64,000 nt of DNA from Eutreptiella sp. 'Long Island Sound 2002'. Taxonomy: Eukaryota > Protista > Euglenida. A program made the translations under genes and the position numbers. The DNA is taken from assembly GCA_964036045.1 (NCBI GenBank), contig OZ038378.1:70804001-70868000 (forward strand), read 5' to 3'. Below, piece by piece: positions 1 to 54,800 of the stretch. Positions within the stretch are counted from its first letter, which is position 1, and each line of letters begins with the position of its first letter. Under the pieces are notes generated by a model that was not told the DNA's origin, made no database searches, and saw nothing but the letters and a program-made list of their open reading frames with translations.

Positions 1-1565
1 TTTCGTGGTAAATTGAGGCGCAAATACATGGTTTTAAGAAAAATGGTTTTTTTTCATGTTGTTTTAAAACTTCGTTGTAACCGCCAAAAGAGCAGTTTTC
101 TTCCCCCCCTGATGGATGAATCCCCTAAGTTCATGGAGTTTGAGGTGGGTATACATGATGATGCATATGAGGGAAGGTTTCATTCCCACGTCCCTTTCAT
201 CGGCCCAAGACAATGATTGTCCGGCAAAAGACCTATAATGATATTCATGAGTATTGTATCGCATGTGTGTAACGTTTGTTTGCCCGCTCTTGGTCTTGAA
301 GGGTTGTGCCAAATGTTTAACATTTGGCTGGGGTCCGATGAGGTTTTTTGCTGCTTCTGCCATGTGCACGTGTGTTTCCCCAAAGTTGGGTGGATTGGAG
401 ATTGGTCACTGGAAGGTTGAATTACTATTTGGCGGTGTGCACAAACACCCCCATGTTGTGGGGTGTCTGAGGGTCAACGTGCTTTGGAAAGCATTGAGGT
501 TACACTTTGAATACATGTGGCCTTTCACAGGACATTGGGGGGACACGGCACACGCGCGGCATGAAGATTGAGGTATTAAGCCCGACCAAGCACCTGCAAT
601 CTAGCCGGTGGCCATGCGGGAAGAGTTGTAGTCTCCTCCACTAGTAGGACAAGGGTAGGACAAATCCAAAGGGTATGAAAACTCCACAATGGTAGAGAAA
701 ATCCATCGGGTATAAAAAATCCACAAGGTTAGGAAATCCCCACTATGGGCCTCAAACGGTAGCAATTGACTCGGCCATAGGGCGCCTTGCTCCAAGGTTT
801 AGGAGGCTCGGGGCTATGATAGGGCAGAGCCACCCACATAGAACGTTGTGCCCCGGTCCACTCCTACGGCGGAGCTGCTCCCTGAGGTGCTATTAATTTA
901 ATTTAATTTAGGCGGAATATTGAGTGTTGGCAAAGCATGGAGCCTCTCTGAGTGAACTCGCGCCTCACCATGTATGGGCTGATGTAGAGGAGGAGATTGA
1001 CGTTGACGATGATGGCGATGAGGGTGCCGTGTGTGCTTTATGCTATAGGAAGAAGGACTCTCGGTCTGACTGCAAAGTTTGCCACCTATAGTATTGTTCC
1101 AAATGGTTGAACACCCACACACGTGGGGATGAATTGGTGGCACAGACACCACAGTGGTTTGCCACCTATCACAATCCAGTGGGAGCGGTGGCAACAGGGA
1201 GTAGCCACCCCACACCTCAACCCACGCCACTAGTGGGTTAACAACTAAGGGTGACTGCCCGAGCTAGGGCCACATGCAGTTTCTTTGGCAGGAGGTAAAG
1301 ACTTGGTGAATGCGCAAGGCGGTTTCTCTCTGTGTTTCCTTTGCTTTCGTCTTCTAGGATTGGTGGCGTAAAAAGTGGTGCCTGCTTTTTTTTTCCACCA
1401 TTTTCAATACAATTCGGCATGCGTGATTTTATTTTTTGCGTGATTCTTTTAGGGGGGGGGGGTTAACACTGACCATCCCTGCACATGCACGATGTTAGCT
1501 ATTTGGACACTGCATCCACGAACGAAGACCAACAAAGCTCTGAGACATCAAACATGAGGCTTTGC

Positions 1566-1620
1566 GAGTATTGTAAGGCTGGCAACAGGAGTATTGTAAG
1601 GCTGGCAACAGGAGTACTGT
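1566..1620 (+). repeat. 23-bp tandem repeat (GAGTATTGTAAGGCTGGCAACAG x2 plus a partial copy)
   Basis: Read directly; period 23 (1566, 1589). Confidence 0.9.
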
Positions 1621-2102
1621 AAGCCAGTATAGCCAGCAACGGAATAACTGAATGGCCCAACAACACACCATATGGGGAGAAAACGTACTACACTGTACTG
1701 TCGGCCGAAGGGCATGAAAGGGACCAACAACGCACCTGCAATGCACACAACTACTTCTAACCGGGGATGTGCAGACACCAACGGGGATGAACCATGGATC
1801 CCCCAAAAAATGTACCGTATGCAATGAGTTGCAGCCTCACTGCTCACTGGACCCAACCCCCCCCTCCCACCCCGGCCCAGAATGATTGTACAAACTTTTC
1901 TTCTGCACCGTCAGCTCAAAATTTTGTTGTGTTGCCTGCGTATGCTGTTGTCTTTTCATTGGCTTTGCCCTTGTCTTTTCAATGGGCGATGCTGTTGTCC
2001 TTTGGGTGGGTGGGTCAGGGAGGGGGGTGAGGGCACCCCACCCGTGTGAAACTTTAAACAATCTGAACCAATTGGAAACTTCAGAGGCAAGTTGTTTTGT
2101 CA

Positions 2103-2150
2103 CATCTACAAATGCATCTACAAATGCATCTACAAATGCATCTACAAATG
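2103..2150 (+). repeat. 12-bp tandem repeat (CATCTACAAATG)x4
   Basis: Read directly. Confidence 0.95.
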
Positions 2151-2399
2151 CATACAGCCAGCGGCCAACAGCCGCCATACCATGTTGCACAATGGGAGTT
2201 CCAAGCCTTTTTCGAAATTCTGTAACGGCAAAAGATCGCACCTTTAGCTGCAATACATCCCTTTCCCTCAAGTGGAACTCTGATGCTGTGCCAAGGAGCC
2301 CCTGGAGTGGTAAGGGCCTTTCTGACCCCTTGTTCTGCTGCCTCATGCCATGCCACCTGTTTTTCTCGTTCAGGACGCCCTGAGGTCCCCCAAGCGCTC

Positions 2400-4170: not shown

Positions 4171-7114
4171 TCATGTTGTTCTGCCTCTCACTGTTCCCTG
4201 GTGCCTGCTCCTGCTCCTCCCCCTGCTCCTCCTGCTCTTCCTCAGAAATGTGTTACATTGTGTAGCCAGCTGCTTCAGACCGGATCATTCAGATCCCCAT
4301 GATTGTGGGTATTTCCCCCCTTCCGCTCCTTGTGCCGGGACCTGTGGGCCCAGCACAAGCTCAACATGACACCCTGCCTCAGCAATGTCTGCATACATAC
4401 ACCCAGCCACAGGCTCGATATGCCTCAGGGTGCGGGTGTTGAAGCGTTGCCATGGCATACTGTGTTTGCTGTTTGCGTTACGCACACTCAAAGCAGAGTT
4501 GGACCTCGTGTCACACCAGTGGCTGGTTCTGTTTCAGAACTTGGTCAGTGGTGCCCGGGGCAGGGGGGTGACTTGATGTACATTGGACACACACGTAGAA
4601 AGTTTGGGATACGCACAAGACACACAAGGTTGTAGTTTGGTATTAATTGGGATTCATATAGAAAGACACCTGCCTCTGTTGATTCAAAAGCAGCGAACAA
4701 TGGGAGGGAGCAGATGAGGGCACTTTTTGGGATCAACAGCACAACATGTAACCTAGAGAGCACGTACATACAACACAGCAATTGACACACAAACTTGGAT
4801 TCCAAATGCGAGCAAACGAGATTTCAGCCATGCCCTCTGGGTTGCACCATTTGCATCATGCCTTGAATCGCGCCAGCTGGACTGCACCAGGTGCATCAGG
4901 GGCAGTGGGAGTGCAGAGTTGGGTGCTGGTGGGGGTTGTGGGTGTATTTTGTGCTTGATGTGCATTTTTGCCCCCCGCCCCTCTGCAAGGTTTTTCCCCT
5001 CAACAACGCTAGGTGGGTCAATCTTGCTCCTCCCTTGCCCCTATCTTGCCCCTATCCCCTGTGCTGCCCCTGTTGTTTAGGCCACTCTTAAAGGAACACT
5101 TCTTGCCTAGAGGCATTACATCATGCAGTCTCGCATTTGAAAGATGGTAACGGCGAAACAGCGTTAAGGGCGCTACACTTCATACAACGACAAACCGTTG
5201 TCCAATCGAGATAATAAATAATGGCCGCCTTGCTGTATTGCTCCATTGGGCTCCAAAGATATAGGGGTCGTGCACCATGAACTACGTGATATGTTTTGGG
5301 TGCCTTTATAGTATGCCATGCTAGGGAGGCCAAGGATGAAATCCCTGGACTATTTTACACAACATGATGGTGTTGTGCATAGAGTGGAGTAGAGAGAGGT
5401 GCAAAATGTGTTCATGCTCCACAAAAGATCCCAACTTCAGGTGTTGAGTGGAGCCTTGAAAACCTCGTGATATGGCCGCAGAAGAGAACAATGCTCATCG
5501 CCATTACATGCATCTGTGAGACCCTAATGTAGGGCCCATTTGTCCAGCCCCATAGGTCTCACACGTGTTGTATGGAAGTTTGCACTCAAAACCCTCTGTT
5601 CCATGCAATGTTAAACATCACCACTTGTCAACACTTGCTCCCGTCACTGAGCTTGCACTTGTTGTCACCATTTGGTGCATGACAAGATCGTACTGAGCTA
5701 TGCACACCACTACACTTGGAATGGTGCACGAAAATTTCGATACCTACATCGGACCACATGTGTCCAAATTGCCCTTGCTTGTGTTGGTTTTAGGTGTGTG
5801 TATGGTGTGGGTGACTAATTGTATGTGCTATCTCATAGGGATGGGCATTGGTGCATGTTGTTGTTAGGCATCATTGCATGGTGCGGTTTTTGATATAACA
5901 TGCATTTTGGCATCCAAAATCTGATGGTTGCAACATATCTAGGTGTGTTGCAAGTGTACGTTGGTTGATAACATGCATGCAAAGTAGCATATTAGAGTCC
6001 TCAGGCGGCATGATTCCCAATTGCTTGCCCATGTGCTAAGTTGCCGACAAAAGCTGCGTGAAAGTCCCCACCTAGTGTGCTTGCACAAGTGCCTGTGAAG
6101 TTTGGGTAAGCAAATCGGGCACAAAAATGCTTTCAAATCTTTGACCACGATGGCAAGCCAAGACACCTACCAAAGCTTGCAAAGACATATGTCAAAATGC
6201 TTGCTACAGTCTCCACAATTGTGCTTGCCAAGGCACCTCGACATCGATGCCATGACACATTCGTATCACACAGGGCCGAATCCTCGGTTAAGATTTGAAG
6301 CCCCCCCCAACGAGCTATTGACTATTAATTATTGAGTATTGACCGCAAGGCACATGGGGGGGGGTCGAAGAGGGGCAATAGGGGGGTTAGGGCCAAGGGG
6401 AATGGGGTCTAGGTGGGGCAATTCGCCAGGGGGGTTACACGGCTCAGGGCCATGCGTTGCTTCATCATAGGTCTTCCCATTCCCACCTAGGTCTCCCTCA
6501 AAGCATGACTTTTGCACCCGAACCAAGACTGAAGGGTGGGTCCAAGGTTGTGGGGAAGGGCAGGTCAAGCACACTAGTAAAAGAGGCCGTGGCCGACTAA
6601 GAACGGATGTCGAGGAATACCAAGACCGACTTGGGCCACTGCCGCCCTAACCCCCCCCAATTTTTTCCCGGGCTCTTTCCGCTTCCTCCAGAGACAAGCC
6701 CCCCCCCCACCCCCCCATCAACCCCTCGCAACCCCTTTCGTAGCCTTTTGACCCGCTTCCAAACGCTTCCTTGCCCGCTTCACTTCCCGGAGAGACATAT
6801 CCCCCCAACACTATGTACCCACTGCGAACGGAACTTTTGAATGAATACACTCACTTTGTTGATTTCTTGCCCGTTTTGCCCGTGGTGCCTTGTCTTTGTG
6901 TCCGTTTGCTATGCTTACTTCGCCAAAAATTCATAAAAATTCAAACGACGTGAGTTGTAGCTTGAATCGGTCATAATGTAGCTTAGATTCACAAAAAAAA
7001 CTGAATTGGAGTTCGAATTCGCAACCTCGTGCGCAATCGCATTCGCATCTGTATCCGCATTCACATTCGCACAAACTTCGCGCGAACTTCGCGCGAATAT
7101 CCTTTCATTTTTGC

Positions 7115-8937
7115 ATGAGCATGATGTTCTTGTCGTATGTCTTTCGTTCAAACCCCACCTTCGCTTTCTTTGTGAAAATGTCCACTCAACAGTCGCATCC
7201 CCTTTCCCATATTGGGTCACTCTCACTCCCCGACCCGTCAGATGGCACCCTGGGCCACTACCAGGGCATCCCCCTTCCCTCCGGCACATGGGAGGAGGCC
7301 ACGTACACGGGGGGCCTGGCAGTGGAGGAGGTGGTGGGGTGGGCGAAGGGGTTGGCCACTCCCCCCCAGTTGATTCATGTTGGCATGCGAACACCCGAAA
7401 GGGCGGGATGGTTTGGGAAAAAAGGTTGGGCCACTCACCTTTTTCGGGAGTTGTTGGTGGCCCTCCCAGGGTTGCGGGCCGTCCGGCTCATTCCCGCTGG
7501 TTCAACCGTGGACAGCCTTTTGGGAATCATGGCCACGCACACCGTGGCCAAACCTAAGTCCGGCCTCTGTGCCATGTACCCCACCACTGGCCTCGTCCAC
7601 TGCCCCATGCGGATGGACATGATAGCCATCAATAACTACTTTCCTGCCGGTGAGCCGCAAGCTGACCACTCTAACCTTCCTTTTGAATGGCAGGCAGTGC
7701 AGCCCCAGTGGTGGGACCATCTAAGCATCTTGCCCAGCCACCCGACGGTGCCCCCTCTCCTCCACATCCCCGATATCACTCTGCCCACTCTCCATAGGAT
7801 GAAGGGGCTCAGTTGGTATCGGGGAATTGCGGACCCCCCCCACCCCGTTCATTACGCCCAAGCCCCCCTTGCGCAGGGCACCCCTGCAGGACTCCCCCTC
7901 GTATGCCACCGCCAACCCCTTCGTTTTGGCCGACCGCCCAGCCCCCCCGCTGGCTCCAAAGTTCGTGGACGGCCTCGGCTGCACATGTCATCGCGATATT
8001 CTTGTCGCGGAGGACTGCAAGACCACCTGGGGGAGGGTGGAAAGATTTAGGGCGGCGGGGAACCAAGTTCCACAACATTTTGACCTGGTGTTCAATGTGA
8101 AAACCGATGGAGGAGCAGAGGAAGGACCCCACCCTTTGCCAGCGGTACCAGTCCAAGCCATCCAAAACCGGGGGAATGGCATGTGCCCTTATCAGAAATT
8201 TTATTAACAGCATCAACGACCGTGTCCCCGATCCGTTTCAAGACTTGTTTGACATGCCTTGCTCCATCATTGTGTCGGGTGCTCAATCGGGGGACCAGCT
8301 CCCCCACACGGATGTTTCGACTGCCCCAGACATGCTGCCCCCCCGTGACCGCAACCCCTCGAGCTGCGACATCTCGACCTTCGTGGCCCTCTCCCCCCAG
8401 TACCTCATCAAAGTCCAGGCGGGAACGGCGCTGGGGGAGGCCACGGAGGAGAGGTGGGACGAGGTCCTCCTCCAACGGGGGGTCCTCGTCCTCATCATCA
8501 CTGCCCGGCACCACGCCCCCCCCCCGGGCAAGAGATGCAGGGGGCACTGTTCACGCAGTGGACCCCCGATCGGCGTCATTCATGGGTTAAGACGGATACG
8601 ACGCATCTCGACCCCCCCCTCCCCTTGAGCTTAAGGACTGCCTCGGCCTGCTGGACGGGGAGGGCAGGGAGGACGTGCCCACTTTTGGGCAACTGTTGCT
8701 GTTGGGGGTTGGATTAAAGGCTCGGGTCGGGCTGGCCACCCGGGACATGGTGGACGACATCTTCAGCCCCCCTGAGGTGGAGCCAGGCCCCCCCGTGTGC
8801 ACACACCACCCCCTGTTCCTCTCCCACTCCGCCCACGACATCTCCCCGTCATCCTGCACGCGGGGGACATTTTGATGTGGAATGGGGCGTACGAGATGGA
8901 GGTTGTAAAGGGGGATTCAACGGACGTCTTCTACCCC
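7115..8937 (+). pseudogene. Frameshifted exon encoding a 2OG-Fe(II) dioxygenase-like (PhyH-type DSBH) domain
   Basis: Overlapping ORFs 7115-8050, 7827-8207 and 8107-8628 join by frameshifts; SIIVSGAQSGDQLPHTD (H 8305, D 8311), ISTFVAL, EVLLQRGVLVLIITARHH (distal H 8509/8512). Confidence 0.6.
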
Positions 8938-9081
8938 GTATTCGCGCAAAGTTCGCGACATTGTGCTGCGCATTCGCAAATGCTTCAAATTCGGTTAGGC
9001 ATGCAGATTCACGAATTTTGCGCGAAGTTCGCGCGAATTTGGCATGAATAGTTACACTATTCCCTTTCATTTCATTCTCAG
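8938..9081 (+). other. Phase-0 GT-AG intron containing TTCGCG palindromic motifs
   Basis: GTATTC donor after codon CCC; pyrimidine tract TTTCATTTCATTCTCAG acceptor; splice joins DVFYP to EQRHRRLP in frame. Confidence 0.55.
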
Positions 9082-10578
9082 GAGCAAAGGCACCGCCGGC
9101 TGCCCGATCCCCGTGCGACCATGCACGCTCACAAGCGATTTCGCCCGGCCGGGTACACTGATGCTCCTACATAGCCGGGCACAGTCCGCCACGTGACCCT
9201 CGACCTGCCCCGGAGTTCGGCCGGCGCCGTCCCCGCAGACGACCGGGCGGCCATTCCCGCAGCCCCCCCTGCACCCCCGGCCTCAGACCCCGTGGTCGTC
9301 GCTAACCCCGTGGCGGGGATGGGGGTACCCCGCCGATCTCCCCCCCATCAGCTCCCTCCCCATGGTGCGGTCCCAGCCCCCGTTCGCATGGAAGCTCGAC
9401 CTCCCGGGACGGAAGTGGGCAAGGGAGGAGGTGGCGACGACGACTTGGGAGGTCGAGGTGGAGACGCAGGATGGGGCGCGGGAGCCGCCCCTCAAAATGT
9501 CTTTCCCCTGTGCCATCACGGTCCCCAACCCCGGGGGAGGGTTGAAGGAGAGGGAGACGATTATTGCCCTCTACGCATACCGGCTGCGTGAAGGGCATTG
9601 GAGAATGGATTGTTTGGTGAAGGGTAGGGCGGAGGTGCCGGAGGGGTAGCTGAGGCGGTTGGCAGCCTTGGCGGTGACGGGGGTGCGGGGATGGGGGGAC
9701 CGGGCGGAGGAGCACATGAGCTATGCCTGGCTCCAAATGTTCATGCGGGCAAAACCGGAGCAGCGCAAGCATTTGGGGGAGGTGGGGGGAGTGGTGGACG
9801 TGGATGCGGAGGAGGGGGGGGGGGAGGATGCCTCCTCCATGCGGAGCTCCAAGAGCGGCGGGCTAAGGGGCAAGGTGGGCCGGCCCCGCAAGGCCCCCAA
9901 ACTGCCCGCCAAGTCGGGTGGCCAGCCCTCGGCTGCAAAGCCCCTGCTGGCAACGCACGCCGCCGCGCAGGTGGACGCTTGGGTGGCGGCGCAGGCGGGG
10001 GCCATGCCTGAGTGGCAGAAGCGGGCGGTGGCGGCGGAGGGGGAGGTTCTCCTCCTGCGAGGCAAGGTCCAGGAGGCAGAGCAGCGGGCGGAGGAGGCGG
10101 AGCGGCGGGCAACGGCGGCGGAGCGGGACCGGGACCATCTCCAGGCAGAGGCCCGCATACCCAAGCCGAAGGCGGGCGCGCACGCGCAGCAGCAAGCAGA
10201 GCAGACGGAAGGGGTGGGACCGGGTCGAGGGTGGGGGGTGGTACGAAGTACCTTATGGTGGGAAGCCAGGCGTGGAAGACCCAGGCAAAGAAGGTGAAGG
10301 GGGAGGTCTCATCAGTGGCCGCCACCGCGCGCCTACTGCCTCAGCAGAAGGACGGGCCGACCTTCGAGTCGGTGGTGCCGGGGTATCAAGGTGCCATGGA
10401 CAGCCATGACGTTGTTGAGAAGCGGTACCCGGGGGATGCCCTGGTGGAGCCGCCACTAACCCAGCCTTTGAGCCCCCCCCCCCCCCCCCCAGCCCCCCCA
10501 GCCCCCAGGAGCCCATTGGTATGGGACCTCCACAGGCACTGCGACCCAGTAGTGTCGCCCTGCGAACACCCTTTTTAA
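9082..10578 (+). pseudogene. Second exon: Pro-rich region, AT-hook (KVGRPRK) and coiled coil, with in-frame stops and frameshifts
   Basis: ORFs 9362-9649 and 9659-10297 are in one frame separated by a single TAG; GRPR at 9872-9892; EAEQRAEEAERRATAAERDRD heptads. Confidence 0.6.
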
Positions 10579-10860
10579 CCATTGTAAATTACAACGGGGC
10601 CGACCAATGGCCTGATCGTGCCGCGAATTTCGCGCCAACTTCGTGTGATTTTGTGCAAATGCGCGAACAACTCAGGCGACTACTATCCTCAGATTTAGGC
10701 GAACTTCGCGCGAATTTATGCAATATTTGTGTTCAATGTTGGGGTGCTTGTACGAATTTTTTATTGTGCGATGTTTGCCAATAGGGCTGACTTTCTCTCA
10801 CTTTCTCGACATTGCAAATGGACATGCATTGACTATTGCCTATTGTCATTTTTTTTTGTC

Positions 10861-11370
10861 ATGGGACGTGGGAGTGGCGACAAGGGGAAGAAGGCCTTTG
10901 CCCATATCAAATCCAGACAGCACCGGGCCTGCCGCTTGTGGACATTGCAAGACGTCGTCTTTGGGGAACTAGGAGCCGAGTATCTGGTGTAGCACCTCCC
11001 GGACACGGGCCAGATTGTCCTCACGCCGGTAGACCGGCGGGGGGGGTGCATTGCGCACCGCCTCTCCAAATTTTCATGCTTCGCCATGGAAGGCAGCCAC
11101 CGTAGGCTCAAGCGCATGTTGCGCAATAGCGGCGGCCTAAGCCTTCAGCGCGGGCGCCTAGGTGTGCAGGTTGTCGTTGACAACCGCACCATAGACGACA
11201 GGCTCCGTGCAGAGGGGTAGGGCGTCGCAAAGAAGTCCATGCGTGGGCAAGGCCCATTGACCGTACAACAATTGGCTAGGCGGGCCTGCAAGAGGGCCCT
11301 TAGTGACCTCAACTATGCACATACCCTTAGTCAACATTTTACACGCCGCCAGCAGCAGCGACCATAGCAC
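10861..11370 (+). pseudogene. C-terminal remnant of a Transib/RAG1/Chapaev-type DDE transposase
   Basis: HRLSKFSCFAMEGSHRRLKR (E at 11089) fits the L-x-x-F-S-x4-E-x-x-H/N-x3-K third-catalytic-residue motif; N-terminal DD part absent. Confidence 0.4.
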
Positions 11371-11889
11371 GTTTGGACAGTTGGACGGTTAATGGCAAAG
11401 AGCACTTGCTTTGTTATGGTGAAGATGTGCATGCCCGTACGCAAAAATGGGGCCAAATTCGCGCGAATTTCGCGCAAATGTGGCCCAAATTCGCATTCGC
11501 AAGGGTCGCAGCAGACACTGGCGAACGGCACAATACGAATAGGGCATTAAACGGCCACTATGGCCACCCAGTTTGTGGAAAAGGAGTAGTTTTTTCTCGC
11601 AGGGATGTGTATTTTATTTTTTTAGACTTTTTGAAACCATATCCTTCGTTCCAACCCATTGAAAAGGGCCTTTTTCGGACAAAATAGTTGTTTTGGACAC
11701 CCATATTTGCATTCTCATTCCAAAGTTCCCTTAACGGCCATTCGCAAAGGGTACATACCCCACACCCCTCCCCTGTATCTCCCCTTTCGAGGGTTTTTGG
11801 GCACTTGCATGGCGTAATATGGGTCAATGATGCTTAATTTAAAATAGCCTTAAACCACTAGTTTGAGAACCTCAAGTGGTCTAGCAACA

Positions 11890-12250: not shown

Positions 12251-12259
12251 CCATGACAT

Positions 12260-12900
12260 GACGACAGACACCAAAGTCGCCGCCGCTGCTACACACGGTC
12301 GCTCCTCCACAGAATGAACAACATGCGGACTGGCTTCCTATTTAGTTAGCTCTCCCCTCATGTCTACCACGACGCAGCAAGGACAGTGTTGGGGATAACG
12401 GTTTGTCTGCCGCTGTGACAATCCTAGCCGCCGTCAACGAAACAGCACCTCGACCGCATCGCCACATTTGCCCATTGTTGTCCTCTGTACCCGCTAGGGG
12501 GTCTATTGCAACGCCGCGTAGTGTGATCACGCTGGTGCTCAACGTATGGATGCTGACGTCCTCCACTCCTACCAGGGCCCTCCGCTTTTGGGTGCACAAT
12601 GTGGGGGCGGTACATGATGCATTGGGGGCCCGGGTTTTGGTAGCAAAATGGCGACGAAGGTGGACATGTTGTCGGGCATATAAGATGCAATTTTGAAGAC
12701 CAAGGGTGTGGGAGTGTTGGGTGGCGGGATTGCGGCACGGGTGGCATCGTCAAGACATGGTGCCCTCTCCCTTGGGCAAAGAACTCCAATGAGCTTGGCA
12801 CAAAGTTTACCGTGACCACAAGACAAGCAACCCCAGCCACATTCTTGTCACGGCACCCATCAATGGGGTACATTTGCCAATGAAGTACCCGTGCATCCTA
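12260..12900 (-). pseudogene. Decayed UPF1-like helicase, copy O (N-half)
   Basis: Walker A-like MHGYFIGKC (12896-12870), LVVTVNFV (Ia-like), Walker B-like CFVDGG (~12445-12427). Confidence 0.4.
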
Positions 12901-14099
12901 TCAATTTGGGCGATGTCCCGCTCAGTAGCCCCAAAAACCGAGATTCTGCGACGCCTAGCAGGTGCGTGTCTCATATAGCGATGGAGATGTTGTCACTTGC
13001 ACCCCAAAATGCCAACGTAGTATCCCACCATGCTCTTGTGAGATGGAATAGGGAACATCTCGTCTATCTGGTCAAAGATCACCTCGCTAGTCAAAATCAC
13101 CCCTCGGACGGTCGTGGGTGGCTATATTATCCTTGTCCGCCACCATTGATGGTTGGAGGACCCGCCGATCCCCAGTATCCTTGGGGTGGTCTGGGAGCAC
13201 TGGGTGCAAAGGCATTACAAGCTCAGCATCGCGGATCTCGAAGAACGAGTGGTTTTGCCCCAGGGGCGCATACCCCGGCCCCTCCAACCCACGCGCCCTT
13301 GTCGTCGCGTACACAATGCCCATTTTTGGGGGGGCGGCACAAACCTCATTGTTAGTAGTGTTCAAAGCTCGCACCGGCGGTGGAGAACACGGAGCCTCAA
13401 GGTTTGCAAGTGTGTGTCACTTGGTGATGCAGGGTGCTGTATTGTAGCAGCGCTTGGGGCACTTGGAGAAGGAGTCGGAGACACGGCCGTGGGAGGATTG
13501 GACGCCCAGCTTCAACGACACACTCCCTTCCGCTCCCTACCGCTACCGCCCCAAACCCCATTCCAATGCCTCTTCAACACCCCCTTCAGTGTGTCGCGCA
13601 CCCCAAGGCCGTGGTCCCTTTGCTCTTCTTCTTGTTGGCGTTCATAATGGACATGTTGTCCTCCAAGCCCTTGAACACGCTGCCGGCGCCGAGGCACCTA
13701 GCATGACTATCATGGCGAATACGTGCGAGTTGTGCCGCGTGGTAAGAAGTAGACAAATGTTCACTTCCCCCGGGGGCTCCTCGCTGAGGATGGACTGGGC
13801 GACGGACAACATGGCTCTCGTGGTGCCGGCCCGCTAATCCTTGTGAAGTAGGTATGTGACCCCATTCTTAAGTTTTCGCATCCACGCTCCGGTACACCCC
13901 ATGACCATCAATCACTTTACAACGACGCCAAAAGAAAAACAACAAGGTTTGCGCCTGCCGTGAACACCTATTTCAATTACCGGGTATGGGGTTTTGGCAA
14001 GAAATTTCCGGTGGCACTTCCCGAGACACACCCCATAAGGGTCCTAGGCCAAGTTTTCGATTTTGAGGATCATTTGACCCTAAAATCAAACGAAAAGAC

Positions 14100-19289: not shown

Positions 19290-21300
19290 TGTTTCGTTCT
19301 AGCGACGCTCGCTACAACGTCGCTAGAACGTCGCTAGAACGTTCTCGCCTAGAACACAACTAGAACAAAAACATTCATGTATGTGTCGCAAATAAGGCAC
19401 ACCAAAGTGGGGTGGGGTGGAGGGGTAATACACATACACTCATAAAAACCACCACACTTGACACATGTATAGTCATATGTGCCCCCCCCCCCAACACACA
19501 CTTTGGCATAGGCATGTGCACAGCACAACACACAGCACACGATGTCACGGGGGGGGGGCAAGAGGTCGAACACAAGCACCGCACAAACACCCCGTGAGTG
19601 TCGAGCTGTCAACCCCCCCCCCCCCCCACCCCCTTCTTTCCATGTTGTGGTCTTGGTTGTGGGGCCCGTGCTTGTTTTGCCTAAGGTTAGGGAGGGCATC
19701 CATTTCCTCTTTGCAGGTGTGCTAGTTTTTTTGATTGGGGTGAAGAAGTGGGTACACAGTGACACCAAGAGGTAGGTGTGTTACTCCCTCCCTCCTCCTT
19801 GCAATGTGTCTGTGGTATGTGGTTGCCCAGTGTACCGCTGTAGCGTCAGGAGCTGTGCTGTGTTGGTCTGTGGTATGCTTTATCCCCCGTCCTCCCAGGT
19901 TATACAGCCCCCCCCCCCCTGTATGCACTGGTACTTGGCTTGTTGGTCGGTTGGCTGTTGGTTGTCGGCTTAGTTGGTTGGTCGTTGGGTTCCTTGGTTG
20001 GTTTTTGGTGGATGACCCGGTTTCTTGGACAGCTAAGTTTGGATGGTTGGTTGGTTGGTTGGTTGGTTGCATGGTTCGTTGTTTGTTGGCTGGTTGCTGG
20101 GGTGTGTGCGCAGGTGCTATAGCATCGTAGATGGTGTTGGGTGGGGTGTATGTGTGTGTGCTGCCGGACCCGCGCTGTGTGGTGTTGTTGCATAGTGTGG
20201 CTGTGTGTAAGCATGCCTGTGCAGGCATTGCAAGGGTCTTTGGGGGGTCGTGCACATTTCATTTTGGCGTTCTAGCGGCATTCTAGCGAGGTGTTCTAGC
20301 GGCGTTCTACCGGCGTTCTAGCAGCGCCCCTTCACTCACTAGAACGCCACTAGAACACCTCGCTAGAACGCCGCTAGAGCGCCGAAATGAAATGTGCACA
20401 ACCCCTGCAAAGACCCTTGCAATAGCTGCACAGGCATGCTTATACACAGACACACTGTGCAACAACACCACACAGCATGTGTCCAGGCAATACACACACA
20501 TACACCCTAGCAACTAGCCAACAACCAACCAACCAACCAGCCACACTCAACTGTGCCAGAAGCAATCAACCAACAACCCACTAACGCAACAACCAACCAA
20601 GCAACCCGAAAACCAACAGCCAACCAACCAACAAGCCAGGTACCAGTGCACACGGGTGGAATTGCAAAACCTCGGAGGACGGGGACAAAGCATCCCACTG
20701 ACCCGCACAGCACAGTGCATAACCCAGCTAGGGGGGGGGTGGGAGCAAGGGAGGAGGGATGGTGGGAAGGGGGGACCTGTACACTAGGCAAGGAGGAGGG
20801 AAGGAGTACCACACCCACCTCTTGGTGTCACTGTGTACCCACTTCTTCAACCCAATCACAAAAACCAGCACACCTACAACGAGGAAATGGATACCCTCCC
20901 TCACCTTAGGCACGACAAGCAGGGGCCTCGCAACCCAGGCCACAACAATGAAAGGGGGCGGGGCTGATAGCTCGACACTGACGGGGTGTTTGTGCAGTGC
21001 TTGTCTTTGACCTCTTAACCCACCCTCTCCACCCTTTACATTGCATGTTGTGTGTTGTGTTGTGCATATGCTTTTGCAAAACTGTGTGTATGCTGGCGGG
21101 ACGGGGGGAATATGTGTATGCATGTGTCAAGTGTGTTGGTTGCTATGAGTTTGTGTGTCATGCACCCCCCAATCCAGCGTGATAATTTGTTTTTTTATGT
21201 TCTACCTAGTCTACCACTTCAGGCAGGCTAGAACAATTTGTGTTGTAGGCTACAACCATTCTAGGCTACAACATCTAGTCTAGGTGTTCTAGGCTAGAAT
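19290..21300. repeat. ~2 kb imperfect palindrome (foldback) centred near 20330, with CTAGAAC clusters at both outer ends and the centre
   Basis: e.g. TGAAGAAGTGGGTACACAGTGACACCAAGAGG (19741) vs CCTCTTGGTGTCACTGTGTACCCACTTCTTCA (~20818); GTGCACATTTCAT (20250) vs ATGAAATGTGCAC (20387). Confidence 0.9.
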
Positions 21301-27867: not shown

Positions 27868-29340
<1,473 letters not shown>

Positions 29341-31354: not shown

Positions 31355-32785
31355 GGCCGGTGCACAACCTGCTGGTGTTGTTTTTCGGCTTGGACAGCTG
31401 AAAAATCGAAGTTGTCGAAATTTTTTTTTTTTGATTCTGTGATCGTGATACCGTGATTTATTGTCATCATCTGAAATGACTACCCAAGGTATGTAAAGCA
31501 TGTTTTAGGCTATATTTACGTGTTTTTCACCTTATTTGGGTATTGGGCACCGGGGAGGCGGGGGTCTCCCAAGGGATTGGTACCCAACCTGCTAATGCAG
31601 TTTTTCACCTCGCACAGCTCAAACATCGAATTTTTCGAAACTTATTTTTTTGATACCATGATCGCTTGGAATTACCTTCCAAGGTATATAAAGCATACTT
31701 TGGGCCGTGTTTATGTGGTTTTCACTTTATTTGGGTATTGGGCGCCGCGGGGAGGGGGGGGGGATCACAAGGGATTGGTACACAACCCGCGTATGCCGTT
31801 TTTCACCCTGGACAACCGAAAAATAGAAGTTTTTGACACTTGTTTTTAATCACCTAAAATGACCATGCAAGATACGTAAAGCATGTTTTAGGACGTATTT
31901 ATGTGTATTTGATCCTATTTGGGCATTGGGTGCGGGGGGGGGGGGCACGCCACGAGGGACAAGGGCGAGCTAAACAGACAAGGAGCAGGGGCACAACACG
32001 CAGGAGAGGCAACCCGAATAGCAAGAACAAGAAAGTAGAATGCAGCGGATGGGAGAGTGTCCGCCTGGGAGGGAGCGACAATAAAGCTGATGGCTTGGCC
32101 AGCCGGCTCGTCGCTACCGGATGCCAAGGAAACCCCTGCTCAAACGGCATCAGGTGGGGGGTGTCTCCCACAGCCCAGATGGGCTGTTTGCGTAACCCGA
32201 GCATGAGCCCATTAGGGGCAGACCAACCGTGAGGGGGAAAAGGACATATGGTGGGCGGCCTCGACGGCGCATGGAGGAACAGGACACCTGGGCCTCACGC
32301 ACACAGAAACACACCGAGGCAGGCTGGGGACGGCCTATGGACAGAGGCATGTGGACATCAATAGCAGTCAAACGACCCCGACAACAACCATCACATCCTC
32401 AATACGCCAATTATTGGGTGCCGCTAACACGCAAACGGCACACCATGGCACATTCAACACAAACCCAACACACCAACTACCGGGCTCCGCGAACCCGGAA
32501 ACGACACCAGCGGGAGCACCGACCGCATCGGCGGACAACAAGGAGCAATAGGACGGAGCATGCCTAGGGAAGAAAGGGTGACTGTCCTGGGCCCTATAAA
32601 GAAGCAAGAACCAGACGGAATGTCACACAGGGGGTCCAAACTGGATTGGTACACAACCTGCTCATGCACTGTTTGTAGACTGTAGCTCAAAAATCGAAGT
32701 TTCCGAAACTGATTTTCTTGATGTTGTGATCGCCTAAAATGACCATGCAAGATATGCAAAGCATGTTTCAGCTCGTATTTATGTA
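31355..32785 (+). repeat. ~200-bp degenerate tandem repeat: 3 copies at 31355-31950 plus a displaced copy at 32645-32785
   Basis: Recurring ATTGGTAC(A/C)CAACC...AAAAATCGAAGTT...AAATGAC...AAAGCATGTTT...TTATTTGGGTATTGGGC. Confidence 0.85.
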
Positions 32786-32789
32786 GTCT

Positions 32790-34570
32790 GTACCCTATCG
32801 TTGCTTGGGGTAGATTCTGTGCGAGGTGGACTTGCCGAAGGCAATATCAGTTCGGTGTTGATGGTTTTCACTTGCAACGCCCAACACACCGGCATATTGG
32901 CGCAGCCATGCGACCTTCTTCGCCCGATCGCTCTGCAATGGCTTGTGGATTGTTCGCACGGCTCCCTTATGGGCCATGAAGTCCACATCATCAAAGCATT
33001 GTTGATGTTGTGCTCCATGGCCACTAGCAAGCAAGCAATGCCGGAGCCAGGCCATTTGGGCATAGTTTGTGGCCACCACAACCCCACAACCGTTTGCGTA
33101 CGTTCCTTTTTGGGTTGCCAACTTCAGTACGTGGCACACAAGCGGTGCCTCCTCCTAATTCATGTTCGTGCTTGAGCTCAATATGTCGTCAAGTTGTAGG
33201 CTATTCCCTGCCTCTCTGGCAACTCCCGGAACTCAATAAGCCGTTGTCTCCCAAGACTCTCCTCAAGATCTTGCTGCTAGTTGGGCATGTCAAGCTAGGC
33301 TGCCCCCAAGCAACGGGACAGTGCTCCAAACGCACTACAAGGTTTTTTGGTTGCTCACCGGCGGTCTCCAGGGTCTCCGATTTGCAACAACTCGGGGTAT
33401 TGAGTGCCTTTGTTGTGCATGGGATGCTATGAACGTCAGTTGTTGGGTGGCACGTGCCGCACAGGGCAGTAGTGCTATATTGCAGGGCGCATACGCCACT
33501 AGCATGCGCATCAACACCTGTGGCCAAGCCATGTGGCGAAGGAAAGTATTGGGGAGTCACTTGGGTTTGCATCGTGGTACAACATCGGCATCGAATGTGT
33601 ATAGGCTAGAGCACCACCTGCGACTAGCCGATCAGAGTTCCTGGCCACATTGTGCCGAACACTACCCAATTGTGCCATATCTTAGGTGGTGGGAAGGAAC
33701 ATTGCGTTCATCAAGGGGAGGCCATGGACATTGGTGTGCCAGTGACTGATGCCAAGGCGGCCATTTTGTCAAGTTTCCAAGCGTTGCAAGTGTGCACCTT
33801 TATTGGTGCCCGAAATGAGCGCATTCTTCTGCATTGCTGCTTGAATTCCGCAACACGGCACCGTGCTACTTGGCGTTTGATATTGGCTAAGGCCATTGCT
33901 GCAATGCATGATGCCATGTAGGATGATGGCAGCCTGTAGCTGCCAGCCTTCATCGCATGGTTGCTTGATTGCGGGGACAAGCAACGGCATCGGATCCACG
34001 AATATGCCATCATTCTCCTTGTACCTACCACGGGCCCCGGAGGGATGTGTAATTTGTTCCTTTGTGTGGTTGATGTGGCGTCTACTGACGCATAGGAAGC
34101 GCCAGCACATCGAATCTGCACCATTGACCCCGATTCTAGACCATGATGGGTGGGCCAAGAGGGTTGTTACACTTTTAGTGGATTGGGCTTTCTGTCCAAG
34201 GATGCGTGGTGCTGCAGCATGACAAACAGTTGATGGTTCCACCATTCAGAACAATGTGTTTACCCTTTTTGGCACATGGTTGGTACCGAGGACACCCTGA
34301 AGTGAGCCGAGCCGTGTGTTACAGCGGAAGGTAGGCCATGCATTGTAGGCCAGTGGCCCTCACCACGTTGAGTATCAGGCTGCTTTGGATCGACAACATG
34401 CGTGGTACAATGGGGCATCGCATTGCAAGGTGTTGCAAAAATGTGTCCACGATCACATGCGGCCCGATAATTGCCATGAGTTGCAAATGATCCCTACTAG
34501 TCATCGCATCCAGTTATCGCATGCAAATTGTGCGTCGCAACACTGCTTTCCCGACCTTCCCTTGGGTGGT
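32790..34570 (-). pseudogene. Decayed UPF1-like helicase, copy E (all core motifs traceable)
   Basis: QGKVGKA (34564-34544), IIGPHVIVDTFL, LDE (33714-33703), LIG*SQ (33635-33618), LQYS (~33480), VVVATNYAQMAWLR (~33082-33040), TIHKPLQ, RTDIAFGKS (~32856-32830). Confidence 0.6.
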
Positions 34571-35644
34571 ACGACGTTCGGACTCAACGGTCCAACTTTC
34601 CACAAAAGAGGAGGATGTGTCGGAGGACTACCATGATGCCACTCTACTTCTATGGGCGGTGGTTTATGGGGACCCTGTGCATGGTATGCGGTGTTTTAAC
34701 AATTTGCACACGTGCATCTGCCCACCGCTGCACATTGGCCACTGCATCGGACATGTTACATGCACGGGTGTAGAGGCGCAGCGAAATAGCAGGACCCGAG
34801 CTGGTTATAGTCTAAATAGCAAACAGTGACAGGTGCTTGGTATCGTATGCGGTTGGTCCGGTAGGATGCCGATTGCTGGAAGTGTGCAACATGCTCGCTT
34901 TACGTGGCACTGAGACATGTGCAGCTGATGATGTGATTCTTGCTGGCATCAAGGACACACAAGCAACAATTAAGCTCAAAGGGTTGCTTGAGTGCGTAGT
35001 CTTGTTGGACCATGGCCATTTGCTTCCACTTTCAAGCAGAGAGCGTGGTGCATATGGTGTAGACCAGTTGCGGCGCTTCATGGGGTACCACCGAGATGAG
35101 TTGTATGTAGCACATGTGCATTGTGATTGCGCCTGGGCAGAGGGGGTACACCTCAAGCAGCACATTTTGAAGTGCTTTGCCAATATGCAAATGTCCAAGA
35201 TTTGGAAGCCCTTGCCACCCTAAAGAGCATGCACAGTGGCGTGTCCCTCAAATGTTGCGAACACATTGTCCTGTCGAAGGTGCTTTAGAGCGGACCAGGA
35301 CATTTTGTTGGAGGTTCACCAGTAGTATGCACGACCTTGTGGAGATGCTTGTCGTAAGTGTGTGCATGCCCTTGCATTCCAACCCTAAAAGACGCCACAC
35401 CACCCCAAGGGGGGGGCGGGGGCAGGGGGGGGGGGGGCGCAGAGGTCGAATAATCCATATTTTTGTATAGATGGCTAGTGTAAGCTACCGGCCCGTCCCA
35501 CCCCGGGGGTTGGGAACCCCACCCACCACCTTTGGCACCGGCCCCGGGCGCCCTCATGTACCCTATTTTACCATGGGTAAATGTTGTCAATATCCCGTTT
35601 TGCAAACGGGCGGGCTTTGACACCCGTCTCAACAATTGGCACTC

Positions 35645-35910: not shown

Positions 35911-36984
35911 CACACTACAATTCCTTTGATCCAAGGGTAATCGGGTGGGGTACCCGTGGAAACGGGGTAGCATACGACCTCTGTTGCATATTGGGGGCCT
36001 GCGGCCCCATGCGGGGCTGTATGGCACTTGCTCCAGGGGTCTTGCGGACACCCAAGGGGGGGGGGGGGCTCTTATGTGGGGGTGGGCGTAGCTTACACAT
36101 AAGGTATATCTACATAGGGCAGAAACCCCCCCCCGACCCGTGTGACTTGTGCAGGATTGCGGGGCAAGTAAGGAGCACACCACCTATTGGCAATGTGGGG
36201 ACCCCAAAAAAAAAACCTTTGAGATGGATTTCGGATGGTTGGGCCGAAGTATTTGGGCACACAAAGGTAGCGCTAGGGCTGAAAATGGGGTATGACATCA
36301 CGAAACAAAGTTTTTAACCAATGAGGTCAAAAACCCAAAATTTGCATGGTTCTCTTGAAAAATGGTAAGGTGGGGTATATGTACCCCTTTCCCTGCCCCT
36401 TGTGGGGCAAAAGGGTGATGAATGGATCCAATGGAAGGCAGTAATGGCAATTTTGTGGATGTTGATGGGGTTTTGGGAGGTAGAAAGCGCTTTTTTTAGA
36501 CTTTTCAGGCTATTTTGGAGAATTTTACTCGGTAAGAAACCCAATGGGCAAAGGCACGAGGATTGGCTATAGCACGGCTTGTGGCATCATGTGCACGGTT
36601 CGATGTACGTCCACGGCACGTTATTTCACTACAAATGGATACACGTGAACATGTGCAACCTACCATGCGTCAATGCCGGCAAGGCAATGCAGCAACAACT
36701 CATGATGGTGACATGGTGCCCTTCTTTGGGGGAGAAGAGAAATCGTTGCTCAATAAGGCACCACCTGGAAAGGTGGGGGGGGGGGGGGCGACACAAAGGA
36801 GATGTGGTCACAATTATTGCAGCAGACAGGACTCTTGACACACATGCTCGCAGCCATGAATTTTTCACTTTTCGCAGAGGCATGGAGTGTGCCACATACA
36901 AGCAGTGAATTGGCATCATGTGCACGATGTGTTTAGTCTGCTATGCATGCTTTTTTGCATATCCACACCTTTGCAGAGAGGTGG

Positions 36985-38400
36985 TTGTCCACCTAGCACA
37001 TGACGTTTGTGATGATCTCCAAAAAAACAACAGCGGTGAATTGGTTGCACCACGTAAGCCACGCCAAAATTGTGTTCCGGTTGTAGGATGCGAGCAAAGA
37101 TGGTAATGGCTGCTCATTCGAAAAAAGGCCACACTATCCCATTGCTTGGACATACTAGTCGTAATGTTACCAAGTGGTAGCAACCACAAAGAGGCAAGGG
37201 CCATTGCAATGCCATATGCCTCGCCTCCGTTGGGAAAGTGGGACGCCATGGTTCGTGATACAAATTGTGTCACCCGCTTTGTAGTTTCACACAGCAACCG
37301 CCAAGGTTCTTGCTCCCGCTTACGGTCCGGTTTAGGCATAGGTTTGACATGGATAGACTCATTGATGAATGAGATGCGGCAGTACTCATGTGTTTGTACT
37401 TGTTTGCCTATAATTCTTGGAATTCGGTAGTTTATAGTTCTCCTGTTTTCCAATGTGTGCCACTTTCTCCATTTTCCGCATGTTTGTGCCTCCCTTATCC
37501 TTTTTGCTTGTCCTTTCTATTTTTGGGTGGTTTTACAATTTTCTTGCGTTTTGTGCTCTCTCATTTCCCCCTTTTTCTACAATTCTCATTTTCCAACCCC
37601 CACCCCCATGGTTTTTTTTTCGCGTATTTTTGTTGATTCCGTTTGTGTAGCATTTTGTGCATTTTCCAAGTGGTCCCCATTTTCCCCATATCCCAATCTC
37701 CAACTTCCTTGCCTTGTTTTCTCTTGTTTTTTGGGCGATAGCATTTCCTTTTGGTGGGCTCTTCCATTCCTGCAAGTATTAGACATATTGAGACGCATGC
37801 GACATCTTCTCGTGTGTACCAAAAACTCCACATGCCACATTGGACATTAGTCATTAGACCTTATACACATACTTGGAACCCCCTTCTTGCACCCTTTGTG
37901 CGCGGGCTTTTATGCCGAGGCATTTGGCACGAAGGGCACCAGCTGCATCCACAAGTTTCAAATTTGGTTGTCAAATATACATGCAGTGCCTACTTTTTTG
38001 TGCGTTGTGCCCTTGCCACGTGCAAGCCTTTGCTAGGCCGCCCGGTGGTGGAGGATCGAGGGCCTCCATGTTCAAGAGAATGTGTGAGACCACGTGGTGA
38101 AGCACGTCGGCGGCGAAGACACCATCCACACATGCTATTTTTGGACAGCGAGTTCAAAAGCCTTATGCCTATTTTTGGAAGGTATACTACTAAACGCATA
38201 CAGGGTATTATATTTTCGGATCACTGCACGACGATGGGCCACCGTCTAGTGACCCTTGGGATTGTCTTCCAACCCAATTTGAGCCATGCCTCATAGATTG
38301 CGGCAGTGCAACTTTCGCCTCTTGCAGTTGCCCATCATTCAATGTTGTCTTTTTCCTCTACACAGCGTATAGGCTACGCATACTACGTAGCAATGTTTCA
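36985..38400 (+). pseudogene. Decayed UPF1-like helicase, copy F, with one intron
   Basis: GGCPPST* (~36990), VMAAHSKKG (~37105), FDMDRLIDE (37343-37369), intron 37427-37741, FLLVGS (37745), HQLHPQVSNLVVKY (~37940). Confidence 0.6.
37427..37741 (+). other. Phase-0 GT-AG intron inside helicase copy F
   Basis: GTAGTT donor, T-rich body, GATAG acceptor; removal restores ~21-aa spacing between Walker B and motif III. Confidence 0.6.
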
Positions 38401-52030: not shown

Positions 52031-52035
52031 AACCG

Positions 52036-52410
52036 CCTAACCGAGCCAGAACTCAAGCACAAATCAAACCCGAGCCACACCCCGAAACCGCTAACCCTTG
52101 ACTCCTAACCAAACCCGCCGAGGGAACAACGTAACCACAGCCCACACCCACAGCCCACACAGCTGCCTAACCAGCCAGCTCCAGAAGCAAAGAGACACCT
52201 CACCAAACCCACCCTGACCCAAGCCTAACCGAGCCGAAGCCCCAACACAAATCAAACCCGAGCCACATCCCGAAACCGTCAACCCTTGACTCCAAACCAG
52301 GCCCGCTGAGGGAAATGCGTAGACACAGCCCACAGCCACAGCCCACACAGCCGCCTAACCAGCCAGCACCAGAAGCAAAGAGACACCTAACCAAACCCAC
52401 CCTGACCCAT
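52036..52410 (+). repeat. Two-copy ~188-bp tandem duplication containing CCTAACC motifs
   Basis: CCTAACCGAGCC at 52036 and 52224; CAAATCAAACCCGAGCCAC and CCAGAAGCAAAGAGACACCT in both copies. Confidence 0.9.
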
Positions 52411-52723
52411 ACCCATGTACATCAGGACACGCGAGCCGCACCCCTGGGGCGCGACCGCCACCACAGCACCGACGACACACGCCGGAGAACACAACGCTAT
52501 AGCACCGCCGCACCAGCTGCCCATGCCTGTGCCTGCAGTGTACGCGCGCCTCTGTTTTCCTCTTTTTTGTTTTTTCTTTTTCTTTTTTCAAAAAAAAAAA
52601 AACAGGTAAAAAAAAAAAAACAAAACAAAAACGAAAACGAAAAACAAGAAAAAAAAACGAAAATCAGGGGGGGAGGAAGAGGGACACAACCACCCATGGC
52701 ACACGCGCACCGCACACAGCACA

Positions 52724-52889
52724 CACACCGGTGAACAGGAGCCCAGGGGCCCAGGACACCACACATGCAACACAACACACCGAGCGAGCACACCGGTGAA
52801 CAGGAGCCAGCTGGCCCAGGACACCGCAGACGCACCACAGCAAACCGCGCGGGCACACCAGTGAACAGGAGCCCAACGGCCCAGGACAC
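52724..52889 (+). repeat. ~65-bp minisatellite x3 with conserved CACACC(G/A)GTGAACAGGAGCC..GGCCCAGGACAC core
   Basis: Read directly; the variable parts are homologous to each other. Confidence 0.85.
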
Positions 52890-54119
52890 TGCACACACGT
52901 AGGGCGGCCGAGGGACAGGAAAGAACCAATACCCCATGGGTCGGACGCACTGGGGCGACCCAGCCGACCCACCGGGCCAGTGGCAGGAGCGGTACTCCAA
53001 AGCCACTGGTCCGAGCCCGGCCAGGCTGCATCGGGGACCATGGCAAACGTCCCACGGAGCCATGGAAGCAACCGGTGACAGGCGAGCCGGTACACAGTCC
53101 AGGAGGGGGTCACCTGCCAAGCAGAGTGGCCCCGCAACTCAAGCCACAAGGGTGAGGCGGTCGTACCGTAGAAAAGCGGGCGCAATACCCCTTGTGGTGA
53201 GAGATACTCCACACGGCTGGGCAGCCCCCCAGAGCTGCCGCCCAAAGGAGGGGGCATGTGGCCCTACCCATGGACACATGTGGGGACACCCTCCCACCTG
53301 GGACACATGGACGGGGTGGCCGCGACAATGCCTTCCCAAGCACATGCGGGAGCGGCTCAAGAGGCACCTGACATAGGGCAGTGGGAGGGACAGGACGTCC
53401 CCTTGGTAAGACCTTCTTCCTGCAATGTCAAAGGAGGCATCCCGAGCTCCCGAAGATACCTACCTACCTACTAGTGCCGTGTGGGTCTAAACGCAACTGA
53501 ATTTGGCATGTCCAAAGTAGGGGGTTCACACCCTTCACTTGTCCCAACGGAGCGTAACATGCAAAAACTCCATTTTTGCCATCAAAATTTTGTGTTTGCT
53601 GTGATCAAGTGAAAATCTGTCAATGTGCACAAAGACTGTACCTCACAGGGACATTTGGTTGTCAATTGGATGAAAGGAGCGTCAACGTTGCAAGCAACAC
53701 CTTTAAAGCAGGGGGGGCTGGCACCCTGTATAGCCTGCCCGGGTCCGAGATTCAAAAAAACCTTTTTCCGGAGGGTGGGGGGGCTGTCAGAGTTCTGCTC
53801 GCCCTGATTTTGACCAGGAATCACGCCCAAAATTTAAAATTGGTAGAAATTGGATTCCGTAGATTTTTAGTGACCCTTTGAGAGCCCCTCGAGGTAAATA
53901 AAAGAATTTCACCTATGATGCCACCGTTTGCATACCCTTATGACACTCACCAGATGACCCTGTCAGGCTGTCAAAATTCTGCGGCCTGAATTAGTCTTTT
54001 TCTAAGGGGCGGGGGTCGGATACAAAACCCTGTACGACGGTTGAGCCGACTTCCGCAATGAAATGACTGGTGCAAGGCCCAATGCATGGGCCTAGCCGTG
54101 TCTTCACCATGACAACGCA

Positions 54120-54800
54120 ATGCAGTCCAAAATTTGGATGGAGGGACTTATGGTGGCGCGCAAGACCCTAAAAAAGTGTCTAGCCACCACAATTCAGTAT
54201 CTGCCAAGGCCCTGTTCAAGGCAATGAGCACACTGTTGCCACATTCTGGGAAGAGATTGGCCGACAACATCATGCAATCATCAAGATACACACACAATGG
54301 CACATGCGCAGTCCAAAGTGATTGGGGGTCATCTTGTTGTGCTTGACCGCTGGCAAATCAAGGACCAAGCTCTCCGTTGGTTGCTCTTCCAAAACAGATT
54401 GACCAGGATGTTTGTGATGGCCATTCTCTTCGAGGATGCTATCATCCGCATCAATGTGACAACTCCGTATTTGTACGCACCTTTGCTAATGGGATGAATA
54501 GTTGCCTTCATGCCGGCTCTGGCATATGGTGCGGCAAAAACGGGCTATGGTTTGACATGCGGCACTTCAACGTGGCAGAGGTGGATGAGTCCGTTAGTAT
54601 TGGAAGATGATGGTCACAAAGGAGGACCTATCCTCGGAGGAAAGTATGACGTTGCACGCCAAAAATCTAGATTGTCTCGGGGGAATTCAGATGTATAATC
54701 TAACGAGAGGACAAGTCACTTTCATTCTCCCAAGTATCCGCCATCGCACGCCACTATATCTTTCGGATGCTTTTTGGCTAGTGTTTGAGTTGTTGGAGGT
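54120..54800 (+). pseudogene. Decayed UPF1-like helicase, copy I
   Basis: MEGLMVARKTL (~54137), LLPHSGKRLADNI (54233), Walker B FNVAEVDES (54566-54592). Confidence 0.55.

Follow-up and report, generated by a model that had tools for sequence, protein, structure and literature searches.

Three kinds of described system bear on the DNA considered here. UPF1-like helicases of superfamily 1B (UPF1/NAM7, SEN1/SETX, IGHMBP2, ZNFX1, DNA2 and aquarius) are recognised by the domains AAA_11 and AAA_12. Among the DNA transposons of eukaryotes, Helitrons and Helentrons encode a superfamily 1B helicase of their own; the Helitron helicase is of the Pif1 type and is fused to an HUH Rep nuclease, and to our knowledge the transposon-encoded helicases known are these Pif1-type enzymes of Helitrons. 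The third group comprises the hAT transposons (Hermes, Ac and the domesticated ZBED5, FAM200 and GTF2IRD2), of which the classical elements measure 2.5–5 kb and lack a helicase. The window, i.e. the whole stretch of 64,000 nucleotides analysed here (Eutreptiella sp. 'Long Island Sound 2002', contig OZ038378.1, positions 70,804,001 to 70,868,000), had been described in an earlier note as a graveyard of ten or more decayed UPF1/DNA2-type helicase genes. It holds two relics of a UPF1-like helicase and further debris of the same repeated unit, probably derived from a hAT-like element that carried the helicase, and the other places listed are best explained as chance. A search of the literature found no paper describing such an element, and transposon-encoded helicases were not described there as UPF1 type.

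The family to which the relics belong was reached through a paralogue in the same assembly. An exhaustive protein search was run with the best weak candidate of the window, the open reading frame (ORF) at 33,714–34,166 (−), and gave the paralogues P0123–P0125 (E 6e-23 to 9e-7), which resemble junk ORFs and belong to a dispersed repeat. P0123 lies in a locus designated L024, from ENA assembly ERZ25074135, which also carries the window's own ORF. On the opposite strand L024 has a broken UPF1-like helicase, matched by the generic core profile in four collinear pieces (best two E 3.4e-10 and 1.7e-7). A word search with an L024 piece revealed at least 89 paralogous ORF fragments, 42–92% identical, on ~77 contigs of ERZ25074135. 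Precomputed matches to PF13086 or PF13087 are present on many of these 89 fragments and on genes of the sister loci L027 and L028. Six further sister loci were fetched beyond L024; seven loci bear the helicase, and eight entered a six-frame comparison. The loci read are 10–13 kb long and may stop short of the element ends. Five of them were matched collinearly by the generic core profile, with piece E values down to 1.8e-13. Pieces of L028, the most complete helicase copy among the loci read, matched a Sen1-like helicase (E 1.3e-4) and aquarius (E 1.7e-3) in a phmmer search of the PDB, and these are the nearest solved relatives of the family.

The family shares with UPF1-like helicases the AAA_11 and AAA_12 domains and a consensus motif order of I 'GaGTGKS', Ia 'APxN', II 'DEAS' and III 'GDxxQL'. 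It differs from them in being very divergent (PDB E only 1e-3 to 1e-4) and in the consensus of motifs V ('LDrfqGLq') and VI ('RantLtsRa'), in place of the canonical QGxE and NVAxTR. Further differences are that the family is multi-copy, that all copies read are broken, and that the L024 copy is headed by tandem repeats. In L024:8888–10330 (−) the first ~230 residues are made up of about six tandem repeats of ~32 aa ('SRSNPPLSRPWRRWTRARDRVL...'), which precede the N-terminal domain and the Walker A motif. From Helitrons the family is set apart by a helicase of the AAA_11/AAA_12 type rather than the Pif1 type, and a weak check, of precomputed Pfam matches on the called genes of the eight loci, revealed no Rep domain.

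Family-specific tblastn, with the 89 fragments and L024 pieces and then with conserved pieces of five loci, matched exactly two places in the window (Table 1). At relic 1, 143 matches were obtained over the full extent of the relic, the best with E 4.7e-45 (117 aa at 51% identity), and each of the seven helicase-bearing sister loci matched it. The piece 24,700–24,984 (+) is 48% identical to the L026 helicase ORF over 89 aa (BLASTP, E 2e-27). At the DNA level relic 1 is 67.5–67.8% identical to L024 and L026 over 342 bp, the L024 alignment covering window positions 24,746–25,084 (E 6e-26), and its Kimura two-parameter (K2P) distance to L026 is 0.40. Relic 1 occupies two reading frames, separated by one frameshift, with 1+3 in-frame stops, and the family hidden Markov model (HMM) matched four of its frame pieces at E 3e-6 to 0.09. 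Its motif Ia 'IVAAPTNAYVENLL' (AAPTN) is followed by motif II 'FFDESSRH' (DES) and the motif IV-like 'AQQYY'; the position of motif III coincides with the frameshift between 25,083 and 25,131.

Relic 2 was matched at E 5e-13 with the fragment set and at 1e-11 with the five-locus set. BLASTP gave 54% identity over 41 aa (E 1e-12), and the family HMM gave E 1.3e-9 on the piece 32,798–33,154 (−). A single in-frame stop interrupts the relic, which ends abruptly beside the high-copy repeat. Neither relic, covering profile positions 44–219 and 253–305, includes Walker A, motif V or motif VI; in L024 the Walker A motif reads 'GGAGTGKS', and relic 1 begins after that position. A family HMM built from 70 pieces (paralogues 42–92% identical to the query) found nothing else in the window below E=2. 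A frameshift-tolerant alignment with the family profile, for which the noise level was 48–57 bits, reached 106.5 bits at 25,526 (+); on the minus strand it scored ~71 bits near 32.6–33 kb. As judged by these matches, both relics are homologous to genes that match AAA_11/AAA_12 (PF13086/PF13087). The window pieces themselves gave no significant AAA_11 or AAA_12 match in Pfam; both relics are too decayed for generic profiles. The window thus contains two decayed UPF1-like helicase fragments, which may be halves of one copy.

Table 1. Positions of features discussed in the text, numbered within the 64,000-nucleotide window.
Feature	Position	Strand	Supporting data
Helicase relic 1, decayed UPF1-like AAA_11-type fragment	24,712–25,541	+	Family profile positions 44–219
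Very high-copy repeat	30,600–33,000	unstranded	~200-bp units (period 188–220) and an ~870-bp insert
Helicase relic 2	32,984–33,217	−	Family profile positions 253–305, before motif V ('VVVATNYAQMAWLRHC')
Relic of the ORF following the helicase	33,686–35,398	+	blastn, 69.9% over 1,737 bp to L026 10108–11837
Further non-helicase sequence of the repeat unit	36,542–37,405	+	blastn to L026 11853–12418 and to L024
Motif VI-like string ('VRT...GLWFDMRHFNVAEV'), unsupported	54,347–54,607	+	Best tblastn E 0.95; core HMM E 66; profile alignment 19.0 bits
Decayed integrase core, Pfam rve	58,522–58,887	−	E 2.8e-6, 27.9 bits, under the curated cut-off of 32.6

Among the ten main regions in which the earlier note had placed helicase-derived sequence, two were thus correct in both coordinates and strand, and the other eight were not borne out. 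The region at 24.7–25.5 kb (+) holds relic 1, which lacks the Walker A motif. The region at 32.8–34.6 kb (−) is helicase only within relic 2, and its remainder is the antisense strand of a different ORF of the repeat unit.

The sister copies have sequence in common beyond the helicase. Upstream of it, shared non-helicase sequence extends for at least 5 kb across L026, L027 and L028, and PDB searches of the upstream ORFs returned nothing. Downstream sequence is also common to two of the seven helicase-bearing loci, L024 and L026, in which the helicase is followed by 1.5–1.9 kb and then by a segment of ~3.4 kb. This ~3.4 kb segment is also found in the window, at 33.7–37.4 kb. Its first part there is a relic of the full-length 436-aa ORF L026:10335–11645, which aligns to window positions 33,904–35,202 in two frames with 13 stops (tblastn E 6.6e-39; K2P 0.36) and has P0123–P0125 among its paralogues; L024 carries a decayed counterpart of the same ORF. 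The further segment of the unit (best tblastn E 5.4e-44, 50% over 76 aa) is matched by four loci and overlaps the beginning of another region, 37.0–38.4 kb (+), that had been listed as helicase. A helicase-like string at 33.78–33.96 kb (−) that recurred in generic tblastn is the antisense of the downstream-ORF relic; its paralogues are less helicase-like, and it was rejected as a chance resemblance.

In Atlas protein-language features, the 436-aa ORF scores 0.90–0.94 to hAT-derived families (recognition 3047), and the top-scoring clusters carry FAM200-ZBED5 RNase-like, DUF4371 and Dimer_Tnp_hAT domains. These are its only look-alikes. The ORF is possibly a hAT-type transposase, a lead and not proof. 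The feature scores and the multi-copy, dispersed nature of the element are the points of likeness to hAT transposons; a point of difference is that the ORF has no sequence match to hAT families or to solved hAT transposases.

The very high-copy repeat lies between these remains. Contig depth summed over 30.6–33.0 kb reached 1e4–1e6, as compared with ~20–50 in the flanks, and the flanks claimed as helicase are at single-copy depth. The repeat is also present in sister locus L030 at 12.4–12.6 kb with 75–82% identity, and in the six-frame comparison of eight loci satellite matches to the sister loci fell at 30.8–32.8 kb of the window. It separates and truncates the relics of the helicase element. 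In the sister loci L027 (8.2–13.1 kb), L028 (8.9–13.1 kb) and L029 (8.3–10.4 kb), the helicase is immediately followed by long satellite arrays of tandem repeats. Relic 2 in the window is likewise followed by satellite, of a sequence that differs from the sister-copy arrays. In L031, a called gene with RVT_1 at 12,526–13,062 (+), 5.5 kb downstream of the helicase copy, probably belongs to an unrelated retroelement.

The order in the window is relic 1 (+), relic 2 inverted (−) and the downstream-ORF relic (+); relic 1 and the downstream ORF match the order and orientation of the sister copies. This agreement, together with the complementary helicase fragments, makes one rearranged ancient copy a reasonable inference. 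The stretch from ~24.7 to 37.4 kb holds what is left of a large repeated element, in one or two copies of great age. All of these remains contain many stops and frameshifts, lie at K2P distances of ~0.36–0.40 from other copies, and are interrupted by insertions, including the very high-copy 200-bp repeat. Relics 1 and 2 may be the halves of a single copy split by a local inversion. The element probably is, or was, a cut-and-paste DNA transposon, most likely hAT-like, that carried its own helicase, reached some 80 or more genomic sites and later decayed.

A mobile element is favoured on circumstantial grounds, namely the copy number, the spread of identities, the shared non-helicase sequence and the occurrence of broken copies among satellites. 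The proposal of a mobile-element family with a UPF1-like helicase, already put forward for this DNA, fits the two relics by copy number and shared flanks; the helicase as its 'main cargo' is unsupported. Several points weigh against the favoured explanation. The signs of mobility are copy number and shared flanks, and no element ends, terminal repeats or target-site duplications were defined. No uninterrupted helicase ORF was found in the seven helicase-bearing loci read. The hAT assignment is a lead: the 436-aa ORF has no precomputed Pfam match and no PDB sequence match at E≤1, and its single-sequence structure prediction (pLDDT, the predicted local distance difference test, 38) was unusable. 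None of the RNA runs contains the window stretch. Finally, other regions of the window could still harbour relics as decayed as relic 1 that stem from another helicase family and lack a close reference. A more specific form of the explanation is advanced only tentatively: that the genome has a large hAT-like cut-and-paste family encoding a divergent UPF1-like helicase beside its transposase, in ~80 or more copies of many ages, and that a single ancient copy lies in the window, broken up by an inversion and by inserted satellites.

The same family might instead be a host gene family, for example of a defence helicase, that grew by birth-and-death duplication, the shared flanks being segmental duplications. 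ZNFX1 and MOV10 are UPF1-like helicases that serve as host defence genes, no element termini were found, and the pairwise identities range as widely as 42–92%, all of which would suit such a history. It is nevertheless unlikely, given that the fragments are distributed over ~77 contigs, that every copy read is broken, and that the copies sit among satellites and other repeats. An ORF with transposase-like features, moreover, follows the helicase in L026, has a decayed counterpart in L024 and also occurs in the window. Nothing was found that supports a host defence role, which had been the other origin suggested for the helicases of the window.

Considerably less probable is the graveyard as originally described, in which both strands would be strewn with decayed helicase genes of the UPF1/DNA2 type, at least ten in number and belonging to several families. 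Eighteen places were under test, ten main regions and eight weak traces, and all searches used single stop-free pieces. Motif strings were counted by regular expression against second-order Markov simulations. The pattern GxGK[TS] occurred three times in the window, as compared with 4.1 expected, and in none of the claimed regions; the strings TIDxxQGxE and NVAxTR, corresponding to the motifs V and VI that had been reported, occurred nowhere in the window. In 80 stop-free pieces of the ten main regions, each taken from its claimed strand, Pfam detected neither a helicase nor any P-loop family at E≤1, and in the ten best motif-bearing pieces it detected no helicase family at E≤10. Neither was a helicase family found in 526 six-frame pieces (stop-to-stop, ≥65 aa) from the whole window, which gave 57 family matches at E≤0.1, as compared with 53 expected by chance, the decayed rve integrase being the only standout. 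A phmmer search of the PDB with the best motif-bearing pieces gave no helicase.

Reference helicases were obtained from a motif VI DNA pattern scan of viral contigs that yielded 23 loci. Two of these, L010 and L020, were kept as seeds and are cellular-type helicases in which AAA_11 and AAA_12 were confirmed by Pfam. The other 21 were set aside, 15 holding very long ORFs on viral contigs of 25–27 kb and six having only a 22–23-aa ORF. One seed led to 120 homologues, spread over plants, fungi, nematodes, archaea and giant viruses, for a reference set of 122 proteins. The same seed matched Sen1-like, UPF1/NAM7, SEN1, SMUBP2, ZNFX1, DNA2 and aquarius entries in the PDB; hence the set represents the family named in the earlier note.

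With these 122 proteins, tblastn gave 421 matches in the window at E≤10, of which 59 reached E≤1 and none reached E≤0.01, as compared with 354–551 and 34–62 at the first two thresholds and best E values of 0.001–0.057 in five simulations. Profile HMMs made for UPF1-like helicases found nothing significant. In a frameshift- and intron-tolerant profile alignment the window maxima were 21.5 and 20.0 bits, and the simulations gave 18.6–29.3; the claimed regions scored 13–20 bits. Markov simulations served as controls, together with the window in reverse and decoys made from scrambled profiles. Very weak profile matches were more frequent in the window (76) than in simulated DNA (47±6), but this excess vanished against column-scrambled or reversed profiles on the real window DNA, which gave the same number and scores. 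Nine of 78 weak matches lay in claimed regions on the claimed strand, as compared with 6.9 expected, and they showed no collinear order. Self-comparison of the window revealed no mutual similarity among the claimed regions at either DNA or protein level. A word search with the longest ORF of one claimed region (24,170–24,949 (+), 260 aa) returned only the query itself.

The limits of these generic searches favour the graveyard to some extent, as do the two places that proved real and the weak motif-like strings at several of the listed coordinates. When back-translated helicases were planted with 1% indels, all were recovered at ≤20% substitution, about two-thirds at 30% and none at 40%. Relic 1 itself was missed by the generic profile (E 21), and the negatives elsewhere therefore leave room for relics as decayed from some other helicase family. 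On the other hand, the decoys performed alike, the weak matches were not collinear and the claimed regions were not enriched in them, which gives no reason to believe in further relics, and the 70-piece family profile adds none.

The other eight main regions and the eight weak traces are unsupported by generic and family-specific tools alike and had no family-specific match at E≤1e-3. Their best generic tblastn E values were 0.13–7.7, and their profile alignments of 13–20 bits compare with a noise band of 18.6–29.3. Motif-like strings are present at 44.87–44.94 kb (+) ('QNQYRI'), 39.27–39.33 kb (−) ('LYHGP'), 54.35–54.6 kb (+) ('RHFNVA') and 16.61–16.66 kb (+) ('HPNF..FY'), but searching this DNA with profiles that had been scrambled or reversed yields just as many. 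The motif VI-like string in Table 1 falls within the noise band and has no family-specific match. In six-frame translation the window is rich in C, W, H, P and R but has little D, E and K, and short helicase-like strings occur in it by chance. These sixteen places thus look like chance resemblances. The frameshift-aware and profile searches that had been proposed remained at control level with generic profiles and revealed two places with the family-specific one. The original observation is therefore partly confirmed and its interpretation partly supported, and the result for the window is mainly a correction of the count.

That the window has no helicase-derived sequence at all, as every generic test would have it, is refuted by the family-specific E values of 5e-45 and 5e-13 and by the agreement of all sister loci, and is given practically no credence.

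The window as a whole is apparently non-coding nuclear DNA, CpG-depleted and laden with repeats. Its composition (52% G+C; CpG 0.65 and TpA 0.66 of expectation; TpG/CpA 1.3) is the signature expected for non-coding DNA, and neither tRNAs nor Rfam families were found in it. Stop-free stretches of at least 100 aa number 221 in the whole window, as compared with 169±10 in local Markov simulations, and the surplus is spread across many bins with peaks at 16–20 kb and 56–60 kb. The longest, of 413 aa at 60,391–61,629 (+), is rich in S, T, A and Q and has neither a Pfam family nor a convincing look-alike by Atlas protein features. Pfam searches of all pieces ≥65 aa at E≤0.1 revealed no dioxygenase, RAG1-like or Tudor family at 7,000–11,400 or 26,200–29,400. 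A large imperfect palindrome at 19,419–21,169 has arms at ~19,419–20,309 and 20,340–21,169 that are 75–92% complementary, with ~30 nt between the innermost arms and GGTT/AACC-rich tracts inside. On either side of the decayed integrase core, the minus-strand pieces 57,819–58,355 and 59,592–59,891 resemble, by eye, the RNase H end and the integrase C-terminus of a long terminal repeat retroelement.

Generic profiles and simulations had called all of the places in this window chance, and it took a paralogue from the same genome to bring the true relics to light, which is a lesson of method. For the genome, the relics indicate a large family of repeat units bearing a divergent UPF1-like helicase. 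If the tentative reading of a hAT-like family is true, a UPF1-type helicase, otherwise known as a host enzyme of RNA surveillance or defence, would here be the gene of a transposon. Should the element prove to be a transposon, it would provide a test case for why a DNA transposon keeps an RNA/DNA helicase of the kind that hosts use against transposons.

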